From: Octopus bimaculoides
Lineage: Eukaryota
Reading direction: 5' to 3'
Length of the DNA stretch: 51,367 nucleotides
Assembly: GCF_001194135.2 (NCBI RefSeq)
Contig: NC_068983.1
Location: forward strand, 10,499,642 to 10,551,008
The notes below the pieces were generated by a model. The model was not told the DNA's origin, did not search any database, and worked only from the letters and a program-made list of their open reading frames with translations. Each line of letters starts with the position of its first letter. Within the stretch, counting starts at the first letter, position 1. This document shows, in pieces, positions 14,890-48,291 of this stretch. The position numbers were made by a program, and so were the translations under genes.

Positions 14890-14933
14890 AACCTCACATA
14901 TTGCTGTTCAGGCGATCTCTTCCTCCAGTGTGA
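14890..14933 (+). CDS. CKS1: Cks exon 3 (terminal coding)
   Basis: Acceptor TTTTTTGCAG. Encodes (E)PHILLFRRSLPPV*. AATAAA hexamers follow at about 14978 and 15075. Total protein 78 aa. Confidence 0.95.
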
Positions 14934-17900
14934 TTGTGTAACTGTGACCTTGATTCTGAAAATGAATGTTCTGGTAGAATAAATTGTCTGAGTTTTTTTT
15001 TTTTAACCAAATGTGTGTGGCTGGGTATTTTAAAACCACACAATATTGCATATTCCTATGCTCGCATTGTACATAATAAAGATCTAGTATGTTCCTCTAC
15101 CTTGGTTCTTGTTTTAAGTACTTTGAATAATGAAATCGTTTTCTGTTGCTTTTAAAGATGCCTATGAGCAAAGGCCATCAACAAATGCTTTCTAAGTTTT
15201 TGTGTCTCATGTAAACCTTTTTAACAGCTCTCAGCTAACATTTTTGTTCAGCCTTCCAATTCTTTGATCAAAAGACAGTGTAAAAGAGCTTCTCCTTTGA
15301 GTTTTTTTTTTTTTTTTGTTCTGACATACCAGTCTAGAAAGCTAGATCTATCTTCCATGACATTGTACTCTAGCCACAAGGCAGATTCAGGTGTCATCAT
15401 TTATGTCATGGAAATATCCATGCTCTTCATAAGGAGTTAGAATGTCTGAATCCCAACAGACAAATTATTCTCAACAATCAGTCCTGATTACTTCTACTAC
15501 AAAGGTATTAGTAGATAAATTAGCCTAGTTGCTTTATAAGGGTTAATGCTTCATTCTTCATTGCCAGTTGCAAATTTGGACATTTGTGTATACAAGTGCA
15601 GGCATGACTGGATAAGAATTTTGCTTTCCTACCACATGGTTTTGGGTCCAGTCTCATTGTGTGGAACCTTGAGCAAGTATTTTTGACAGCCTTGGACTGA
15701 CTAAACCCTTGTAAATGGAATGGGTAAACAAAAACTTTTTTTAAAAATTTTATGTTCTTTATATGGTCATTGTAAATGAATGTCACTGTCATTCCCCAAC
15801 TTTCTGCAAGAGACATGTCTGGCCATGGAGAAATATTACATTGATGAGGGTTGGTGGCAGGAAGGGCATCTGTCTAGAAAATCTGCCTCAAATTTTGGCT
15901 TGTTGCAAGTATGGAAAAGTGTATGTTAAAGCAATGAGCAATGGATTTTGCAGTTAGTCAGGAGAGAATTGAAACCTGTTTATCAGCTATGCAAACTGAA
16001 GATACAATTGTAATAAGATTCAATCTCACCACAAGCACTGTGAGATAGATTCTGCTAGAAATAGCAGCCAAGTCTAATTAACACTATTTTATAGAGGTGA
16101 GACAAGGCATTAAGAATCTAATCTTGAGCAAAATAGATATGCTCAAAGCTGGAATGAATTGAATTGAGTTTAATCAGTCAGGGAAAACCTAGAGATTAAA
16201 ACAATCATTTCCAAAGTGTTCAAATAGATTATGGTTTTAAAACTATTGACCTTGAATTTGAGGTCAGTCTTTTCTTTCAGGGCAGACTTGTTTGCAAAAT
16301 GGAACACAATATTTTGCCCTGAGGAAAAGTCTTCCATGCAGAATCCTTTACTACAGAGAGAGGAACTATTTCCTAGTTGTGATTAAGTTTCTGAGGTTAT
16401 GGTTTCTGTAGAGACAAATGTATGTATAGGACTTCTTTTCTTTTACCTTAGTCTAAGAGGAAGAAAAGTGTACAACTGAGGAAATTCTCCAAACTAAAGA
16501 CCTGAGGTGTTCAAATGGATGACGGATTGTCTTATTTTGATATTCAGCACTAATGAGGCTTAGTGCTGGTTGTGCCATGGTTATACTGAGAGAATCTAAG
16601 AATGGTACTTAAGATTTCCAATATTGAAGTATTAATAAAATAGACCGAGATTGAACCGTTTTACAGATGTCATATATATATAAGTATAAAGAATACTGGC
16701 TAATAGTTGATCAGGTCAATGCTTTTCTCAAAGTTACCTGATGAAAATCTGTCTTGCTCAGTGTCAAATGAGGAGTTGGACTGCAACAGTGTGGTCTTTG
16801 AAGGAAAATGATTGGGAAATGTTGGTATCAACTCAGTTTCGCAATATCATTCGTGCTGTACAGAAGTGTAAACTGGATTGCTTGCAGAGGCTATACCGCC
16901 AGGAGTGACGACCTCTTTTAAGTATTAAGAAGGGGAGGTAATTTGGTAGTTTTCATCATTGTTCAGCAGCAACACTGGTGCCAAACTATTGGTAATTACA
17001 CTTCACTTAAATTATATGAATGCTGTGAACAAGGGACCAGATGCAATTGCTCAACCAGCTAGTAATAGCAAAATCATTCACTACCATCTTGCAGAAACTA
17101 ATTAATTGTAAGAAAATTGTGGAGGATCTCCATTTTGGAATTTCTTTTTTTCTGTACATATTTCTTTGTCTGAAAATAAAAATTATACATGGTTAGGAAA
17201 TTTGCTTCTTCAAGAGCTGACTCCACTTTAAAGAACTATGCCACATTGTTAGTGACTAGCTTGTGTTGTACAGAGGGAAAAAAATTTTAATCCCAAAGAA
17301 AAACATACCTACATATGCTTTTCTTGGTGATTTGTCTGTACATCTATCAACCATACTCTTTGCAAGCTTATGTATGTGCTTATCTGAGGAGATCAATTTA
17401 AGAAGCTACTGTGATGAGAAGAGTATCCCTGCACAAAGAATACTGGTAGAATGCCCTTGTCAAAAGTTCAATGACATGTAAGTACAACAGGCCAGGCATA
17501 ATTTGGGATTGAGAAAAGAAACAATTCACAGTAATTGAAATCAGTTGCTTAGCAATGTCAACATTATGTTAAATATCTGTGAACAAGAAAACGTCTATGC
17601 TGAACTGATATGAAGACTGCGGTTACTGCATCAGGACTATGACTATAATTATTGGATCACTTGAAGGCAAGTGAGCTGGTAGAATTGTTAGCACAATGGG
17701 CAAAATGCTTAGTGGCATCTCATCTGTCGCTATGTTATGAGTTCAAATTCTGTGGGGGTTGACTTTGTCTTTCAGAGCCGATAAAATAAGTACTAGCTTA
17801 GGGGTCAATGTAATCGATTTGTCCCCCTACTCCGAACTTACTGGCCTTGTGTGCCAAAGTTTGAAACCAATTATTGGACCACTTGGTTAGGTGACTAACT

Positions 17901-24352: not shown

Positions 24353-24388
24353 CGTGTGGCCGGCGATTTACAAGACACACCTGGAACT
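24353..24388 (+). other. M6PR: Probable 5' UTR part of the first M6PR coding exon (acceptor at 24351-52)
   Basis: Strong acceptor CTCTTTCTTTAACCCTACAG, implying an upstream non-coding exon that was not located. The region 23860-24600 is CpG-rich. Confidence 0.5.
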
Positions 24389-26622: not shown

Positions 26623-27894
26623 TTCGGTCATCCCATAAATGCGGTTTTTTCAATTGCTTGAACTAAATGTCGGAGGGGGTGGGATAAACTACCTCCATCA
26701 ACTTGCTTTAAAAGCATGTAGTAATTTTTACCTTATTCTTAGTGCAAGTTTTGAAGAGTGCAATTCGATTTTAACACTTATTTTTTCAAAACTATAGTGG
26801 AAGTGACAAAGGAGCTTATTCGGCATATTTCGTGTTACGAGTTCAGTAAAGGCAACAACACAACGGAAAGTGCGAAGAATATTAATGCAGTATATGGGGA
26901 TCGGATAATAAGAGTAAGCCAGTGTCAATGGTGGTTCCAGAAACCCCAAGCTGGAAACTACAGCCTAGAAGACAATCCTCGCCCTGGAAGATCTGGAGAG
27001 CTCGACGAGGACGTCCTGCAAATCCTGGTGGAACAAAATCACATCGTAACTGTTGAGGAACTAGCAGAGAAGCGTGGATTTGGTCATTCAACCATTCATC
27101 GACACCTGCGTACCATCGAAAAGTTAGTAAATTGGGTCAATGGGTTCCTCACAAACTTTTTGAGTTTTATCGCACGCAGAGAGTGAATGTGTGCTCTTCT
27201 TTGCTGTCACATCTCACGAATGAACCCTTTTTGGACCGAATAGTGACTGGTGACGAGAAATGGGTCCTCTATAAAAATGTCAAGCTCCGAAGACAGTGGG
27301 TAGGGAAAGGAGAAACACCGGCACCCCAGGCTAAAGAAGGTCTTCACCCACGTATGGTATTGTTATCTGTTTGGTGTGATATGAAAGGTTTAGTCCACTT
27401 GGAACTTTTAAACCCAAACCAAACGATAACAAAGGAGATCTACTGCGAGCAGCTTGAGTGGCTTAAGTGAGCGCTAGAAGGAAAAATGACCATCTTTGGT
27501 TTCAAGACGAAAGGTGTTCTTCCATCAGGATAATGCTCAGCCACATACAGCGAGGATGACATCTCAAAGGCTGGAGCAGTTTGAATGGGAAACGTTACCC
27601 CACCCACCATATTCACCGGACATTGCCCCATCTGATTATCATTTATTCCGCAGTCTTCAAAATTATTTGGACGGAAAAAATAGGAATTCTGAAGACGAGG
27701 TCAGAACAGTACCGGAGGAGTATTTTTCGTCACGAGCAAGTGAATTTTGGAAGAGGGGCCTTGCAAGTCTATCAGATAGATGGAAGAAGAAAATGAAGGA
27801 GAATGTATTTTAGATTAGAAAAGAACTTTGTTTATCTTAATTTTGAAAGATAAAAGAAGTATAAAAAAAAACGCATTGTTTTTGGGATGACCCA

Positions 27895-36222: not shown

Positions 36223-36389
36223 GTTTAAAGTTGTTGGTATGATGGGTAAATATATTTATAACATTGGTATATGTACTCCAGTTATGGAGAATGCTAACCA
36301 AGATGATATTGCTGTAATACAGATAAAAAGTGATGACAAGACCAGTACTGTCATTGGCAATATCACTAATACCTACATATTAGATGGGG
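36223..36389 (+). CDS. M6PR: M6PR coding exon 2
   Basis: Acceptor CTCTTATCAG. Encodes FKVVGMMGKYIYNIGICTPV...AVIQIKSDDKTSTVIGNITNTYILDG, resembling human YIYIFRVC...GLVQIN...TVVGRLNETHIFNG. Donor GG|GTAAGT. 167 nt. Confidence 0.9.
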
Positions 36390-36742
36390 GTAAGTAACAA
36401 AATTCTTTAAAAATATTTTGTTTTTCTTATGTACTTCAGTTTTTTTATTTTGTTCTAAAATGTCATTTTGAAGCTGCATAAGCATCTATGATTGTGAAAC
36501 CTTAACAGTGAATGGTTTGCCTATTAATGTATGTTGTTATGCCTTAGATCAGCTCTGATTGAGCAGACATATGATCAAAGATTTCCCAACCAGGATTACT
36601 ATCTCCTTTTGTTTTCCCAGAAATAGTTTACCTGGGACTACATTATTCAGTATGCGTTTCTTTTTTTTAAGATAGAGGGTGATTTGAGGGGCAGGATTTA
36701 ATTGTTGCTTCTAGCAATTTCAGTGACTATATAGTCCTCTTA

Positions 36743-37128
36743 GTGGAGGCGCAATGGCCCAGTGGTTAGGACAGCGGACTCGTGGTCATAGGATCGTGGT
36801 TTCGATTCCCAGACCGGGCGTTGTGAGTGTTTATTGAGCGAAAACACCTAAAAGCTCCACGAAGCTCCGGCAGGGGATGGTGGCGAACCCTGCTGTACTC
36901 TCTCAGCACAACTTTCTCTCACTCTTTCTTCCTGTTTCTGTTGTGCCTGTGATTCAAAGGGTCAGCCTTGTCACACTGTGTCACGTTGAATATCCCCGAG
37001 AACTACGTTAAGGGTACACGTGTCTGTGGAGTGCTCAGCCACTTGCACATTAATTTCACAAGCAGGCTGTTCCATTGATCGGATCAACTGGAACCCTCGA
37101 CGTCATAAGCGATGGAGTGCCAGCAACA
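36743..37128 (+). mobile_element. Full-length tRNA-derived SINE (family D) with 12-bp target-site duplication
   Basis: Head GGAGGCGCAATGGCCCAGTGGTTAGG...GGTTTCGATTCCC and CAA tail. TSD ATAGTCCTCTTA at 36731-42 and 37129-40. Confidence 0.85.
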
Positions 37129-37872
37129 ATAGTCCTCTTAAAATTATGGCTTCAGTCAGATGTAGCAGAGGGAAAGGACATTATTCTAAGAAAAATTTCT
37201 AAAGAAATGAAAATATTTTGGAGATTGTTACTGTGTAGCACTTGGTCAGCCCAGATTGAGCAGTGCTATGATCAAAATATGATTTGAAGATTCAGCTGCT
37301 ATTTCTAGCAGGTTCATTTGCTGATAAATTGGCATAGTATATGTGGGTGAAATTGGTACTGTTGATGTAATTTATGTTCAGTTTTAATAACTGCATGGAA
37401 CATGTGGAAATAATGGAACCACATAGGGATATAGTGTATGAAAAGACAGGTAGAGAAAAAATAGCCCACAGTTTTAACACAGGTGGGCAGTTTCAATTAT
37501 TATCAAGTTAAGAGTTTTAGTTCATTACAATGTAAACTGTTTCAGTTCTCATTAAGATATCAAGTCTTTATACTCACACACCTGTGTGTGTGTGTGTGTA
37601 ATTTTGCTTGGGTTTTCTTGTCTTGACAATGCATGATAGTTGTAAATGCGTATCACTGTCATACAAGCAGTGTCATTTGTTTCCAATATTCTGCAGAAAC
37701 TTGTCTGGTCATAGGGAAATATCAACTTGTTAGGTAACAGGTGAGGGTTAGCAACAGGAAGAGCATCTGGCTTTAGGAATCTACATGTTTGCATGGGTTT
37801 GATGGGGTTTGCTGGCCAAGCTCCTACACAGTGAGACTGAACCTAAAAACCATGTGGTCACAAAAATATTTA

Positions 37873-37945
37873 TCGTAAATCCTCGAGTATAGTCCGCCCT
37901 TGAGTATAATATGCAGGGGATTTTTAGGGGGCTGTACCTCTGAAA
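37873..37945 (-). mobile_element. Second copy of the same MITE, inverted, running into a gap
   Basis: Reverse complement of 32940-33011. Confidence 0.75.
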
Positions 37946-38587
37946 NNNNNNNNNNNNNNNNNNNNNNNNNNNNNNNNNNNNNNNNNNNNNNNNNNNNNNN
38001 NNNNNNNNNNNNNNNNNNNNNNNNNNNNNNNNNNNNNNNNNNNNNNNNNNNNNNNNNNNNNNNNNNNNNNNNNNNNNNNNNNNNNNNNNNNNNNNNNNNN
38101 NNNNNNNNNNNNNNNNNNNNNNNNNNNNNNNNNNNNNNNNNNNNNNNNNNNNNNNNNNNNNNNNNNNNNNNNNNNNNNNNNNNNNNNNNNNNNNNNNNNN
38201 NNNNNNNNNNNNNNNNNNNNNNNNNNNNNNNNNNNNNNNNNNNNNNNNNNNNNNNNNNNNNNNNNNNNNNNNNNNNNNNNNNNNNNNNNNNNNNNNNNNN
38301 NNNNNNNNNNNNNNNNNNNNNNNNNNNNNNNNNNNNNNNNNNNNNNNNNNNNNNNNNNNNNNNNNNNNNNNNNNNNNNNNNNNNNNNNNNNNNNNNNNNN
38401 NNNNNNNNNNNNNNNNNNNNNNNNNNNNNNNNNNNNNNNNNNNNNNNNNNNNNNNNNNNNNNNNNNNNNNNNNNNNNNNNNNNNNNNNNNNNNNNNNNNN
38501 NNNNNNNNNNNNNNNNNNNNNNNNNNNNNNNNNNNNNNNNNNNNNNNNNNNNNNNNNNNNNNNNNNNNNNNNNNNNNNNNNNNNNNN

Positions 38588-38626
<39 letters not shown>

Positions 38627-39061
38627 CCAAGAAAGTTAGGGGTTGTGAATCCAACCCACTAAGGGATAATATCTATCCAATATACTGCCAGAAGACATTC
38701 ATTTCATCTATCAATTACTCCAGTCTACTGGAGTTATATAGATAGAATGAGGCATGTCACCTCTAGGCTGAAACAGCTGTAAGACATTGTCCCTTCTTCG
38801 GTCACTAGATGCCCTTTTTTATTTTTATTACTGATATGACATAATATGTCGTATTTGTTTGTATATTGTTTTTATTGTCCTGTCCTCTTAGTTGAAAAAT
38901 AAACAGGCAAATTGACATTATGCAATGTCTGCAAATTGATGAGTACCACATATTCCCCTCCATTTTCTTATTGCTATATATATATATATATTAAATTCAA
39001 ATTACGACAAACGTAAATAAACAAGCGAAGCTTGCTTTTAGAAGCATTGAGATGTCTTTTT

Positions 39062-39294
39062 TATAGAAAGTTAAAGAAGTGATGTTTAAATTCTCAATTG
39101 CAGAATAATGCTAATAATATAGCCTGAACAGGATAAACTATCCCTATTTTGCAGAGAAAAGTGTAGGCGGCTAGCTGTCCACAGCTAGCTGCCTACACTT
39201 TTCTCTGCAAAAATAGGGATAGTTTATCCTGTTCAGGCTATATTATTAGCATTATTCTGCAATTGAGAATTTAAACATCACTTCTTTAACTTTC

Positions 39295-39298
<4 letters not shown>
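39062..39298. repeat. Near-perfect 237-bp palindrome (117/118-bp arms, 2-nt spacer)
   Basis: Arms 39062-39178 and 39181-39298 are reverse complements except for one G/A difference and one extra A. Confidence 0.95.
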
Positions 39299-39333
<35 letters not shown>

Positions 39334-39359
39334 ATAGTTGTCAACTGTGGAATACAACT

Positions 39360-39392
<33 letters not shown>

Positions 39393-39894
39393 ATAAACCT
39401 AATCATTGCATAGTGCATGAAAATACTAGTTTTATCACAATAGATATATAATATTCTACCATTATAATATTGTAAAATTGTAAATAATAAAAATGAAAAT
39501 CAGATTAAGTTGGAATTTCAATGATTTGTGTGTGTGTATGGTGTCTGTGTATGAGAATATTTACATTCCACATATTCGTATGAAACATTTGACCAAAATG
39601 AACAGTGATGTTATGTTGAGCTTAACTGTTAATTTGTCCTGTAGCTTTCCATTTTTGACGACAAGTGATATATAAAGGTTCTTTACTTAAAAAATAGTTG
39701 AGAAGTTCGTTCATCTGCAAATTAATGCCTCAGTAAGTGTTCTTCCTAGTTTTGCCTTCATGGGAAAATGGACTTAAAATGAATGACTGAATGTATGTAT
39801 GTATGTATGTATGTATGTATGTATGTATATACACTAACACACACACATATTCTATATATTTATGCATATATTCTATATATTTATACTTCAACAG

Positions 39895-39980
39895 TTAACT
39901 GGGTATCATTAGAATATCGCAATACCTACAATAAGAAGAAAGCTCTTCTTATGATCATTTGTGATGAATCTGTAACTGAT
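39895..39980 (+). CDS. M6PR: M6PR coding exon 3
   Basis: Acceptor TACTTCAACAG. Encodes (V)NWVSLEYRNTYNKKKALLMIICDESVTD, resembling human SNWIMLIY...RRAVVMISC. Donor GAT|GTAAGT. 86 nt, phase 1 to 0. Confidence 0.88.
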
Positions 39981-40318
39981 GTAAGTAATTTTTGTTTATC
40001 TATTTTTATTAATTCGTCTGAGAAGGCAGGATAAAATCCATGGCATATGCGGGACTTTCCCAGACTAGTGAAATTTATTTTTTCAGCTTAATCAGGAAAA
40101 AGAGGACAACATCCAACAGTTTGATTTGTTTTCCATGGTACCTTTTTTTCAGAACCTCCAAGACTGGTGGGAGTTGAGGAGGAAGAAGTTAACTTATGAC
40201 TGGAGACCTAGCCTTGATGCTTAAAACTGAGGGACCTGCATTAAAGGCATCCAAGGATCAGGAGGTGAAGCCAGACTGGGTGACTGGTTAATCTATCATC
40301 CAGAAATATAGGACAGAA

Positions 40319-40497
40319 GTTGTTGGCACTCCGTCGCTTACGACGTCGAGGGTTCCAGCTGATCCGATCAACAGAACAGCCTGCTCGTGAAATTAATGTG
40401 CAAGTGGCTGAGCACTCCACAGACACGTGTACCTTAACATAGTTCTCGGGGATATTCAGCATGGCACAGTGTGACAAGGCTGACCCTTTGAATTACT
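40319..40497 (-). mobile_element. 5'-truncated SINE family D
   Basis: Reverse complement of 36949-37128, with about 13 differences in about 180 nt counted by eye. Confidence 0.85.
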
Positions 40498-40796
40498 GCA
40501 TGAAAAAATAGACATGAAACACTGACAATGATAGTGATATGTCACTTTCTTTTACTGGTTCCAGTCATTGGACTATGGCTATGCTGGGGCACTGTTTTGA
40601 GGAATTTAACCAAACAAATTGATCCTAGTACTTTTATTTTTGTAAACCAGGTACTTATGCTACTGGTCTCTTTTGCTGACTCACTAAGTTAGCTGGATGT
40701 AAACAAACCAACACCAGTTATCAAGCAGTGAAAGGACATACACAAACAAAAGTAACACACATAGATGTATATACATACATATATAATATATATACA

Positions 40797-41002
40797 GTAC
40801 CACCTGACTGGTCCTTGTGCCGGTGGCACGTAAAAGCACCCACTACACTCTCGGAGAGGTTGGCGTTAGGAAGGGCATCCAGCTGTAGAAACTCTGCCAC
40901 ATCAGATTGGAGCCTGGTGTAGCCATCTGGCTCACTGGTCCCCAGTCAAACCGTCCAACACATGCTAGCATGGAAAGCAGACGTTAAACGATGATGATGA
41001 TG
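40797..41002 (+). mobile_element. RTE LINE 3' end with (GAT)n tail
   Basis: Homologous to 1-234, more diverged. Confidence 0.75.
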
Positions 41003-41172
41003 AACATAAAACCAGAAGAAATGCTGCAAAGCATTTTGTCTGGCATGATAAGAATTCTGCCAACTCAGTGCCTTTTCTTTTAATATTGAAACCATTTCCA
41101 GTATGTTATATGTTCTTGTTTCCTGCCTACAATGCTTGCTTGATTTGTTTGTTTTTTCTCTCTCATTCACAG

Positions 41173-41303
41173 GATAATCCCCAAATTCAAATTATCACTC
41201 GAAACATCAAGAACACTGATAACTACTATGTGTTTACACTTTTACATCCATCTGTCTGTAAGAAACAACCATCAATAAGTGTTGGATCTATCATTGTAAT
41301 TGT
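41173..41303 (+). CDS. M6PR: M6PR coding exon 4
   Basis: Acceptor CTCATTCACAG. Encodes DNPQIQIITRNIKNTDNYYVFTLLHPSVCKKQPSISVGSIIVI, resembling human FYLFEMDSSLAC...LSVGSILLV. Donor GT|GTAAGT. 131 nt. Confidence 0.9.
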
Positions 41304-42164: not shown

Positions 42165-42291
42165 TTTTATCAGTATTGTTGCTGCCTACTTTATTATTGG
42201 CTTCTTATACATGAGGTTTGTCTTAGAAGCAAAGGGTCTTGAACAAATACCAAATTATGGATTTTGGCAAGATTTTGGTAACTTACTGGCG
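42165..42291 (+). CDS. M6PR: M6PR coding exon 5 (transmembrane segment and start of tail)
   Basis: Encodes [42 protein letters not shown], resembling human [31 protein letters not shown]. Donor GCG|GTAAGT. 127 nt. Confidence 0.95.
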
Positions 42292-43715
42292 GTAAGTAGG
42301 TCTATACTCTTTTACTCTTTTACTTGTTTCAGTCATTTGACTGCGGCCATGCTGGAGTACTGCCTTTAGTCGAGCAAATCGACCCCGGGACTTAGTCTTT
42401 GTAAGCCTAGTACATATTCTATTGGTCTCTTTTGCCGAACCGCTATGTTATGGGGACGTAAACACACCAANNNNNNNNNNNNNNNNNNNNNNNNNNNNNN
42501 NNNNNNNNNNNNNNNNNNNNNNNNNNNNNNNNNNNNNNNNNNNNNNNNNNNNNNNNNNNNNNNNNNNNNNNNNNNNNNNNNNNNNNNNNNNNNNNNNNNN
42601 NNNNNNNNNNNNNNNNNNNNNNNNNNNNNNNNNNNNNNNNNNNNNNNNNNNNNNNNNNNNNNNNNNNNNNNNNNNNNNNNNNNNNNNNNNNNNNNNNNNN
42701 NNNNNNNNNNNNNNNNNNNNNNNNNNNNNNNNNNNNNNNNNNNNNNNNNNNNNNNNNNNNNNNNNNNNNNNNNNNNNNNNNNNNNNNNNNNNNNNNNNNN
42801 NNNNNNNNNNNNNNNNNNNNNNNNNNNNNNNNNNNNNNNNNNNNNNNNNNNNNNNNNNNNNNNNNNNNNNNNNNNNNNNNNNNNNNNNNNNNNNNNNNNN
42901 NNNNNNNNNNNNNNNNNNNNNNNNNNNNNNNNNNNNNNNNNNNNNNNNNNNNNNNNNNNNNNNNNNNNNNNNNNNNNNNNNNNNNNNNNNNNNNNNNNNN
43001 NNNNNNNNNNNNNNNNNNNNNNNNNNNNNNNNNNNNNNNNNNNNNNNNNNNNNNNNNNNNNNNNNNNNNNNNNNNNNNNNNNNNNNNNNNNNNNNNNNNN
43101 NNNNNNNNNNNNNNNNNNNNNNNNNNNNNNNNNNNNNNNNNNNNNNNNNNNNNNNNNNNNNNNNNNNNNNNNNNNNNNNNNNNNNNNNNNTATGAAGAAA
43201 CGTCTGGCCATGTGACCTTGGAAACAGCTGATGGTTCCGGACAGGTTTTCTCATGTTATGTGATCTTTGAAAATAAAAAAGCCTCCTTAAATGGTGTTAC
43301 TTGTTTCTACTTCTATACATCAAACAGGCCTGGGGTCTATTGGTCTCTTTTGCCGAACCGCTATGTTATGGGGACGTAAACACACCAACATCAGTTGTCA
43401 AGCGATGTTGCGGGGACAAACAGACACACACACACACATATATATATATACATATATATGACGGGCTTCTTTTAGTTTCCGTCTACTGAATCCACTCACA
43501 AGGCTTTGGTCAGCCCGAGGCTATAGTAGAAGACACTTGCCCAAGGTGCCATGCAGGGGGACTGAACCCGGAACCATGTAGTTCGTAAGCAAGCTACTTA
43601 CCACACAACGCCTGTAGACTTATGAGACAGATGAATGTGTTAATATTCACAAAAAGACATTTTGTTTCTCTTTATTGTCTCAATTTAACGATCGTTTTTC
43701 TTACCTTTCTTCAAG

Positions 43716-43835
43716 GATGGCTGTAACTTAACTTGTCGATCTGGAAGTTCAACTCAACAGAAGACTTATAAAGGAATTGGTGACGACCAGCTTGAAGAAG
43801 AAGATGAGCGTGATGAACACTTACTTCCAATGTGA
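43716..43835 (+). CDS. M6PR: M6PR terminal coding exon
   Basis: Encodes DGCNLTCRSGSSTQQKTYKGIGDDQLEEEDERDEHLLPM*. It carries the two juxtamembrane Cys, YKGI, and the acidic-dileucine C-terminus characteristic of CD-MPR. Candidate AATAAA at 44624. Confidence 0.97.
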   Translation, partial: DGCNLTCRSGSSTQQKTYKGIGDDQLEEEDERDEHLLPM

Positions 43836-47733: not shown

Positions 47734-47920
47734 TTAGCTGCTATGATTAAACTCTATTTCATCAGAATTCAGACTAGCCATACTTGTGGTCGATGAAGGT
47801 CCTCCTTGCAATTTCCGTACATTCCAATGTAAACATTCAGCTAAACTGTTGAACCAGTCATCAATGGGATCTTTACAACATATTGAAGGAACTGGATGAG
47901 TTGCTGTCTTGATTTTCACA
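47734..47920 (-). CDS. NADK: NAD kinase (cytosolic type), terminal coding exon
   Basis: Acceptor TTTTTGCCTTTGCAG. Encodes VKIKTATHPVPSICCKDPIDDWFNSLAECLHWNVRKLQ...*, resembling human PLPSICVRDPVSDWFESLAQCLHWNVRKKQ. 187 nt, phase 2 start. Confidence 0.93.
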
Positions 47921-48291
47921 CTGCAAAGGCAAAAATTCACATCATTAAGAATGTAAAAATATACAGGCAAAACATTTATATTAAATCAATGTGAACACTG
48001 AATTTCATTGCACAATCAGTATTTTTAGCTGTGAAAAAATTCCTTTTCTATTTATTTTCAGAATCAATATTTTCTCTAATGGCTTAAATATAAAGTCTAA
48101 TAAAATAAACTTGTTTGCCAGTACTTTCATATATATAACCTCCATAAAAATCATTCTAAAGATAACATAATATAGTTTAAAATACCTTTTGCAAAGCAAT
48201 GAAATCACTGTCATGGCTGATGACAGTACCACCTAATTGGCACCTGTGCCAGTGGAATGTTAAAAGCACTGTTCAAGCATGATTGTTGACA

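Follow-up and report, generated by a model that had tools for sequence, protein, structure and literature searches.

The cation-dependent mannose 6-phosphate receptor (CD-MPR or MPR46, encoded by M6PR) is one of the two receptors that define mannose 6-phosphate (Man-6-P)-dependent lysosome biogenesis, and its four mannose-contact residues, Q66, R111, E133, and Y143 in bovine numbering (Q-R-E-Y), are taken as the hallmark of a functional P-type lectin. In the mammalian receptor, loop D is tethered by the C106-C141 disulfide; D103, N104, and H105 of the bovine loop reportedly make the phosphate and Mn2+ contacts, and replacing R111 with lysine is said to inactivate binding. Mutagenesis found Q66, R111, E133, and Y143 crucial for Man-6-P binding (PMC11422237). 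A second described system is Drosophila LERP, the ortholog of the cation-independent receptor (CI-MPR), in which the Man-6-P-binding residues are not conserved and which is implicated in lysosomal function, in flies reported to be without the enzymes that make Man-6-P (PMC4610224). Here we analyzed the M6PR gene in a 51,367-nucleotide (nt) stretch of Octopus bimaculoides DNA (NC_068983.1, positions 10,499,642 to 10,551,008, forward strand; the whole stretch is called the window, and positions are counted from its first letter). The encoded receptor keeps the trafficking tail of the family and has a remodeled ligand site, and, judging from the residues at the pocket positions, the octopod CD-MPR has most likely lost the ability to read the usual tag of lysosomal enzymes.

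To compare the pocket residue by residue, we aligned the window protein to the bovine chain 1keo_A with phmmer, where the chain index equals the mature numbering, and to about 60 family members with MAFFT. Like bovine and human M6PR (PDB 1M6P, 1C39, 1KEO, 2RL8), the octopus protein belongs to the same Pfam family and has type I topology and a helix plus nine-strand barrel; it keeps Y45, Q66, and Y143 (Y73, Q96, and Y166 in the octopus), the cysteines of C6-C52 and C119-C156, and, in the tail, the FW motif, the Cys pair, the YxxΦ signal, the acidic cluster, and the HLLPM end. Unlike the mammalian proteins, it has K133 in place of R111, N164 in place of C141, and T169 in place of E146, its loop D is eight residues shorter and lacks D103, N104, and H105, the C106-C141 disulfide is absent, and the protein has a single N-glycosylation sequon. 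The two alignments draw the loop D gap differently, phmmer splitting it into two and six residues (G99 and D100; N104-E109) with D103 opposite an Asn, and MAFFT leaving one contiguous gap of eight residues (G99-C106), and six residues lie between Y96 and position 111 in octopods compared with 14 in bovine. The counterpart of E133 is T156 by phmmer or R157 by MAFFT, and the other three octopods that we compared carry Q at the R157 site. Under neither alignment does an acidic residue stand opposite E133, and strand β8 and the loop that follows it contain no acidic residue before D163. The Q-R-E-Y signature is therefore incomplete in the four octopods, with Q and Y kept, R111 replaced by K, and E133 by T/R/Q, and two more features of P-type lectins, loop D contacts tethered by C106-C141 and a set of three luminal disulfides, are missing. 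The original prediction, made by eye from the DNA alone, had described a luminal domain with four cysteines, an exon 3 with only eight residues between a conserved Tyr and ALLMIIC, an exon 4 devoid of Glu, retention of Y45, Q66, and Y143, lysine for R111, a loop D shorter by eight residues, and the loss of both C106 and C141. Each of these holds in our alignments: the cysteines are C38, C80, C141, and C176 (six in bovine), the exon 3 segment after the Y of LEY is RNTYNKKK (16 residues in bovine), and exon 4 (DNPQIQIITRNIKNTDNYYVFTLLHPSVCKKQPSISVGSIIVIV) has no Glu. The residue opposite E133 had been given as T or I, of which T stands (with R157 as the MAFFT alternative) and I does not.

The same short loop, the lysine at position 111, and the absence of E133, C106, and C141 recur in O. 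vulgaris and O. sinensis (both 94% identical to the window protein) and in Argonauta hians (74-77%). All pocket residues are kept in four decapodiform sequences (50-56% identity), one of which clusters with the Sepia/Acanthosepion pharaonis M6PR, and they are also kept in bivalves, gastropods, annelids, a hemichordate, scorpions, a coral, hagfish, chimaera, and teleosts. To quantify the loss, we scored the 55 positions whose conservation reaches 85% or more across 46 non-cephalopod CD-MPRs (24 luminal, 31 in the transmembrane (TM) helix and tail). Ten of the 24 luminal positions are lost in all three octopods scored and none in the decapodiforms, while octopods lose none of the 31 TM/tail positions and decapodiforms one, indicating that the loss is concentrated on the ligand site and that the trafficking module is untouched. 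The ten positions are G99, Y102, H105, C106, R111, E133, C141, L144, E146, and one stalk Leu, and among them E133 is invariant in the 46 non-cephalopod and all decapodiform aligned sequences. At the sequence level, the dismantling of the canonical Man-6-P site is octopod-only among the ~60 aligned relatives.

The exons were placed by tblastn with the O. vulgaris protein P0001 and with human M6PR, and the coding sequence was assembled from them. The gene lies on the forward strand and has six coding exons with a coding sequence of 819 nt, encoding 272 residues with no internal stops, and every internal junction is AG/GT (GT-AG introns). The region 36223-41303 corresponds exactly to exons 2-4. 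The features of the gene are as follows.

24389 (ATG)-24576, forward strand: coding exon 1, signal peptide and N-terminal helix, placed by tblastn with P0001 and coding-sequence assembly
36223-36389, forward strand: coding exon 2, strands β1-5
37946-38587, no strand: assembly gap of 642 N within intron 2, no coding sequence missing across it
39895-39980, forward strand: coding exon 3 (86 nt), loop D remnant
41173-41303, forward strand: coding exon 4, strands β8-9, stalk, and start of the TM helix
41191-41226, forward strand: former pocket-wall segment I154-Y165 (bovine V131-F142), hypervariable among octopods
42165-42291, forward strand: coding exon 5, remainder of the TM helix, membrane-proximal tail, and FW motif (GFWQDFGNL)
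42471-43190, no strand: second assembly gap, 720 N, within intron 5
43716-43835 (TGA stop), forward strand: coding exon 6, distal tail

An AG acceptor near 24353 opens exon 1, implying a non-coding 5' exon upstream, and this exon encodes C38 (24500-24502), the equivalent of bovine C6. Exon 2 encodes Y73 (36251-36253, Y45), C80 (36272-36274, C52), and Q96 (36320-36322, Q66), together with the lone sequon, NIT. Exon 3 holds the loop D remnant, R127-K132 (39918-39935; six residues versus 14 in bovine), then K133 (39936-39938) opposite R111, and the octopus C141 (39960-39962), which is bovine C119. In exon 4, T156/R157 (41197-41202) stand opposite E133, N164 (41221-41223) opposite bovine C141, and T169 (41236-41238) opposite E146, and Y166 (41227-41229) and C176 (41257-41259) correspond to Y143 and C156. 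The exon 5/6 junction (..NLLA/DGCNL..) is continuous with the orthologs despite the gap in intron 5, and exon 6 carries the Cys pair (DGCNLTCRS), YKGI, the acidic cluster, and the C-terminal DEHLLPM, so that the protein ends in ...DERDEHLLPM. The first gap is confined to intron 2, and loop D is shortened within exon 3, which is contiguous. The last base of exon 2, a phase 1 G, joins the TT at the start of exon 3 to give ...TYILDG-V-NWVSLEY... in frame, and this junction is collinear with bovine ...TQIFQGSNWIMLIY... with nothing missing. The window as a whole is collinear with the O. sinensis locus at ~90% nucleotide identity, and its synonymous divergence (dS) from both O. sinensis and O. vulgaris is ~0.06.

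Three octopod loci are free of N: those of Argonauta hians (L001), O. sinensis (L008), and O. vulgaris (L009). Their exon sizes are 179/164/86/131/127/120 and 179/167/86/131/127/120, their translations match the deposited proteins exactly, and the exon 2/3 junction is the same as in the window. A tblastn search of the window and these three loci with squid and scallop exon 3/4 peptides (E ≤ 10) found no alternative exon 3 or 4, the short octopod exons being the sole matches in all four sequences, and the introns orthologous to intron 2 in the three gap-free loci contain no CD-MPR-like reading frame. A longer, 285-residue O. vulgaris isoform (P0076) was considered as a transcript that might restore loop D and was rejected, because it differs by an N-terminal extension only. 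Losing both cysteines of the pair had been taken as real remodeling rather than error, and this is borne out by independent assemblies of four octopod species, which share the changes and of which three have no gap at this locus.

Exons 2-6 match Pfam PF02157 (Man-6-P_recep) with E = 7e-96 and 320.7 bits (cut-off 25.4), covering profile positions 41-254 of 254, and an octopod representative ranked among the CD-MPRs in our profile search. In the AlphaFold2 model, built on a 48-sequence alignment, the luminal blocks have predicted local distance difference test (pLDDT) values of 83-94, with one helix (residues 46-59), nine strands, and a TM helix spanning 184-210, and the 14 best PDB matches of Foldseek are all bovine CD-MPR (target-normalized TM-score 0.70-0.78, E ~1e-11). 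The MPR fold, an N-terminal helix and a nine-strand flattened barrel followed by a single TM helix, is thus predicted to be retained. The tail exons match the human query with E = 2e-13 and 2e-10 by tblastn, and all tail signals are present (FW, the two palmitoylatable Cys, YxxΦ, acidic cluster, and C-terminal DxxLL), consistent with the 31 TM/tail positions conserved in other phyla, every one of which octopods keep. The tail had been described as intact, which these counts confirm.

The locus itself also points to orthology. Sepia pharaonis M6PR has six coding exons with the same phases, its exon 3 being 110 nt versus 86 nt in the window (24 nt longer), and a convergent NAD-kinase gene lies downstream of M6PR in Sepia, O. 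sinensis, O. vulgaris, and A. hians and apparently also in the window, which argues for orthology rather than paralogy. Upstream, the neighbor is CKS in octopods and TPK in Sepia, so the support from synteny comes from the downstream NAD kinase only. Together with the Pfam match, these features uphold the assignment of the gene to MPR46 by its tail and exon structure. No second M6PR paralog was found by sequence and profile searches of the annotated proteomes of O. vulgaris, O. sinensis, and A. hians, and, on profile, exon structure, and synteny, the window gene is the single-copy octopod ortholog of M6PR. The decapodiform receptors (Sepia/Acanthosepion pharaonis CAE1273502.1 and the transcripts P0004-P0007) share the orthologous locus, the exon phases, and a near-identical tail with it; they differ in keeping loop D, C106, R111, E133, C141, and E146, and in having a longer β3-β4 loop and stalk. 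The octopod protein is shorter there, by six residues in the β3-β4 loop and four in the stalk (window residues 100-104 and 180-183), compared with decapodiforms and most other molluscs, so that the luminal domain is pruned as a whole.

We then estimated the ratio of non-synonymous to synonymous substitution rates (dN/dS, ω) by the Nei-Gojobori method. Between Octopus and Argonauta, the luminal domain has a dN/dS of ~0.23, while the TM helix and tail have 0.06-0.07, and in deep decapodiform pairs the luminal value is 0.13-0.16. The open reading frame and splice sites are intact in four octopod species. These ratios show, at this level of analysis, that the luminal domain as a whole is under purifying selection, the values being rough but far from neutrality. 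Constraint is not evenly distributed, however: in the segment I154-Y165, 11 of the 12 positions differ between the window and Argonauta, versus 32 of the 134 other luminal positions (24%; Fisher p = 5e-6). The equivalent bovine segment, V131-F142, had held E133, R135, and C141. In decapodiforms only 2-3 of 13 positions of this segment differ, making it as conserved as the remaining domain. We read this pattern as the old pocket wall having probably been released from selection while the remaining domain was maintained, and the segment being the least conserved part of the domain leans toward loss of pocket function over retuning. The original prediction had proposed that the receptor may either sort cargo independently of Man-6-P or bind some other ligand, a functional proposal that goes beyond these sequence data.

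In the interpretation that we favor, and consider probable, octopods carry a lectin-dead ortholog of CD-MPR that has a canonical tail and cycles between Golgi and endosomes. The comparisons above demonstrate the gene structure, the orthology, a loss specific to lineage and site, and a relaxed former pocket wall, and we infer from them that the canonical Man-6-P binding of the octopod CD-MPR has been lost. The dismantling of the ligand site would date to the stem lineage of octopods, once these had separated from the decapodiform cephalopods. Exon 3 would have lost 24 nt in frame, and with them loop D (D103, N104, H105, and C106), and substitutions would have turned R111 into K, E133 into T/R/Q, and C141, the partner of C106, into N/K, with L144 and E146 also changed. 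The resulting protein would be a type I membrane protein with the MPR β-barrel, two of the three disulfides, and the canonical tail, and its cycling from the trans-Golgi network to endosomes and back would continue through the tail signals. Its role would then be independent of Man-6-P, perhaps through cargo bound by another surface or through tail-driven coat recruitment, and Man-6-P sorting, if octopods kept it, would fall to the cation-independent receptor. A search with a GNPTAB query (the human Stealth core, 100% identical to PDB 7S05) returned fragments of ≤201 residues only, none of them with a cephalopod name.

Several observations weigh against a dead lectin. All octopods keep Y45, Q66, and Y143, which could mean that some contact with sugar persists and that these residues are not purely structural. 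With K133, the R111 position stays positively charged, what is left of loop D is conserved and rich in Lys (NKKK/NKKS), and the site could be reached by a different Arg or an acidic side chain, such as the conserved R127 or E86/D90-D91. The selection estimates also have limits, because the dS between Octopus and Argonauta, ~0.9-1.25, is near saturation, making ω approximate, and because within Octopus the luminal ω is ~0.5, a value derived from just 11-12 non-synonymous changes.

One alternative built on these observations is that the lectin was retuned, the remodeled pocket (Q96, Y73, Y166, K133, and the Lys-rich hairpin) binding some other anionic glycan or a protein and thereby sorting cargo. 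The purifying selection on the luminal domain and the conservation of the loop D remnant and the Q/Y/Y residues in four octopods agree with it, and the MPR fold has been repurposed before, as in the IGF2-binding domain 11 of CI-MPR, which is among our fold matches. A newly specified site, however, would not be expected to have its wall, I154-Y165, as its least conserved segment, and no candidate ligand is known; we therefore hold this alternative to be possible but unlikely. Similarly doubtful, in our estimate, is the idea that the receptor was retained because its pruned barrel gained a new ligand, so that a canonical shuttle would now sort a class of cargo unique to octopods. The ligand might bind at the conserved Lys-rich hairpin that stands in for loop D or at a different conserved surface, the MENA(N/D)QDD loop being one candidate, and if a new ligand was indeed gained, the octopods would provide a natural experiment in the re-specification of a P-type lectin.

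Alternatively, Man-6-P or mannose may still be bound through compensating residues, with the kept Y45, Q66, and Y143 and the conservative lysine at R111 in its favor. We consider this very improbable, because the otherwise invariant E133 is lost, the phosphate-binding loop is deleted, no acidic residue is available in strand β8 or the next loop before D163, and the same R-to-K change reportedly abolishes binding by the mammalian receptor. A lower chance still, slight at best, is assigned to the gene being a divergent paralog, with the canonical CD-MPR elsewhere, or a copy drifting toward a pseudogene. The luminal ω of 0.23, higher than the 0.13-0.16 of decapodiforms and rising to ~0.5 among Octopus species, would fit such decay, but ω is well below 1, four species have an intact reading frame and intact splice sites, conservation of the tail is perfect, the NAD-kinase neighbor and exon structure are those of Sepia M6PR, and searches return this gene alone for O. 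vulgaris, O. sinensis, and A. hians. Finally, an assembly or annotation artefact, in which an exon or part of one was missed or is hidden in the 642-N gap within 36223-41303 and the real loop D is normal, has a negligible probability, since the deletion sits inside a contiguous exon 3 with an in-frame, collinear exon 2/3 junction, three gap-free octopod loci have the same exons and yield only short versions with squid and scallop peptides, and the longer O. vulgaris isoform is extended at its N-terminus only; artefact, hidden exon, and pseudogene are effectively excluded.

To place the octopod loss in the wider family, we performed a profile search of 1.84 billion representatives and scored about 90 CD-MPR-length proteins in bovine numbering. 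The Q-R-E-Y set is complete in 60 of these representatives and clearly degenerate in about 15, including proteins from Homalodisca and related leafhoppers, Rhodnius, Gryllus, the millipede Chamberlinius, Penaeus, Procambarus, and the acanthocephalan Pomphorhynchus (P0269, P0272, P0273, P0291, P0299, P0314, P0335), implying that pocket loss in the CD-MPR family is not unique to octopods. A shortened loop D was found in none of the ~90, which have 12-19 residues from Y96 to position 111 versus six in octopods. The mandibulate arthropod and acanthocephalan proteins resemble the octopod receptor in having lost Q-R-E-Y partly or wholly, independently of octopods, but they have a full-length loop D, mostly keep C106/C141, and have diverged tails (..LLSP, ..LLHP, ..LLQP), whereas the octopod tail is unchanged and the octopod change arose in a phylum whose other members are canonical. 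As judged from these alignments, the octopod loss is an independent event inside Mollusca with a distinct anatomy, namely a loop D deletion and disulfide loss combined with an unchanged tail. LERP offers a functional analogy, as an MPR-family trafficking receptor without the Man-6-P residues, but it is a multi-domain relative of CI-MPR, whereas the octopus protein is a single-domain CD-MPR. The non-lectin domains of CI-MPR, such as the IGF2-binding domain 11 (PDB 1GQB, 2V5O), likewise have the same barrel without the sugar residues; they belong to a different gene and serve in protein binding. Our literature search on octopus and cephalopod CD-MPR found no paper describing pocket loss in octopods, and a search on GNPTAB in Octopus likewise gave no usable paper.

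Octopods, an entire animal order, thus carry a CD-MPR whose tail is untouched and whose luminal domain keeps its predicted fold and is under selection but lacks the site. The site is present in squid and cuttlefish, their sister group, and in other molluscs, which makes Sepia and Octopus a clean comparative pair. The case raises the questions of which roles CD-MPR has besides Man-6-P binding, whether one Man-6-P receptor is enough, and by what route a lectin pocket is lost, although the existing precedents for pocket loss among MPR-family proteins moderate it. It also calls for caution in annotation, as the name 'mannose-6-phosphate receptor' should not be transferred as a function to the octopod and many arthropod proteins.

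Two observations concern other molluscan sequences. Three closely related cuttlefish-type cDNAs, L002 (135-1028), L010 (121-1014), and L012 (41-934), keep all pocket residues and show a luminal dN/dS of 1.55-2.2 (35-43 non-synonymous versus 5-7 synonymous differences, dS 0.05-0.07), with a TM and tail ω of 0.05-0.34; the sepiid luminal surface may be evolving fast or under positive selection, or the cDNAs may come from unrecognised paralogs or alleles. In the limpet Patella caerulea, the 169-residue protein P0074, annotated as CD-MPR-like, is very divergent, with an MPR-type TM helix and tail start and no HLLPM end; it lacks C106/C141, keeps an R/E/Y-like pattern, and may represent a separate MRH paralog in limpets.

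The neighbors of M6PR in the window were also inspected. Upstream, the final coding exon of CKS lies at 14891-14975 on the forward strand and reads ...EPHILLFRRSLPPV followed by the stop codon. The start codon of the 285-residue O. vulgaris M6PR isoform (MNVL followed by gt) falls in the 3' untranslated exon of CKS, at 14963-14974, which points to a transcript that reads through from CKS into M6PR or to a chimeric annotation. Downstream, an open reading frame piece at 47734-47970 on the reverse strand, ending ...HPVPSICCKDPIDDWFNSLAECLHWNVRKLQ..., resembles the C-terminal exon of NAD kinase, the convergent gene annotated at this place in the O. sinensis, O. vulgaris, and A. hians loci, and this short piece has no Pfam match.

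The introns contain several repeats. Sequences resembling short interspersed nuclear elements recur across the window and the O. sinensis locus, for example at ~36740-37130 with an inverted copy at ~40330-40480, and ARAGORN detected no tRNA genes in these intron repeats. Intron 2 also contains a perfect 89-nt inverted repeat with arms at 39062-39150 and 39210-39298 and a nested 32-nt palindrome at its center, and the whole of 39062-39298 may represent a foldback element or have arisen in assembly as an artefact. In intron 1, an open reading frame at 26758-27186 on the forward strand matches the HTH_48 domain of Mos1/mariner transposases (E = 2.4e-14), identifying it as a transposon remnant.

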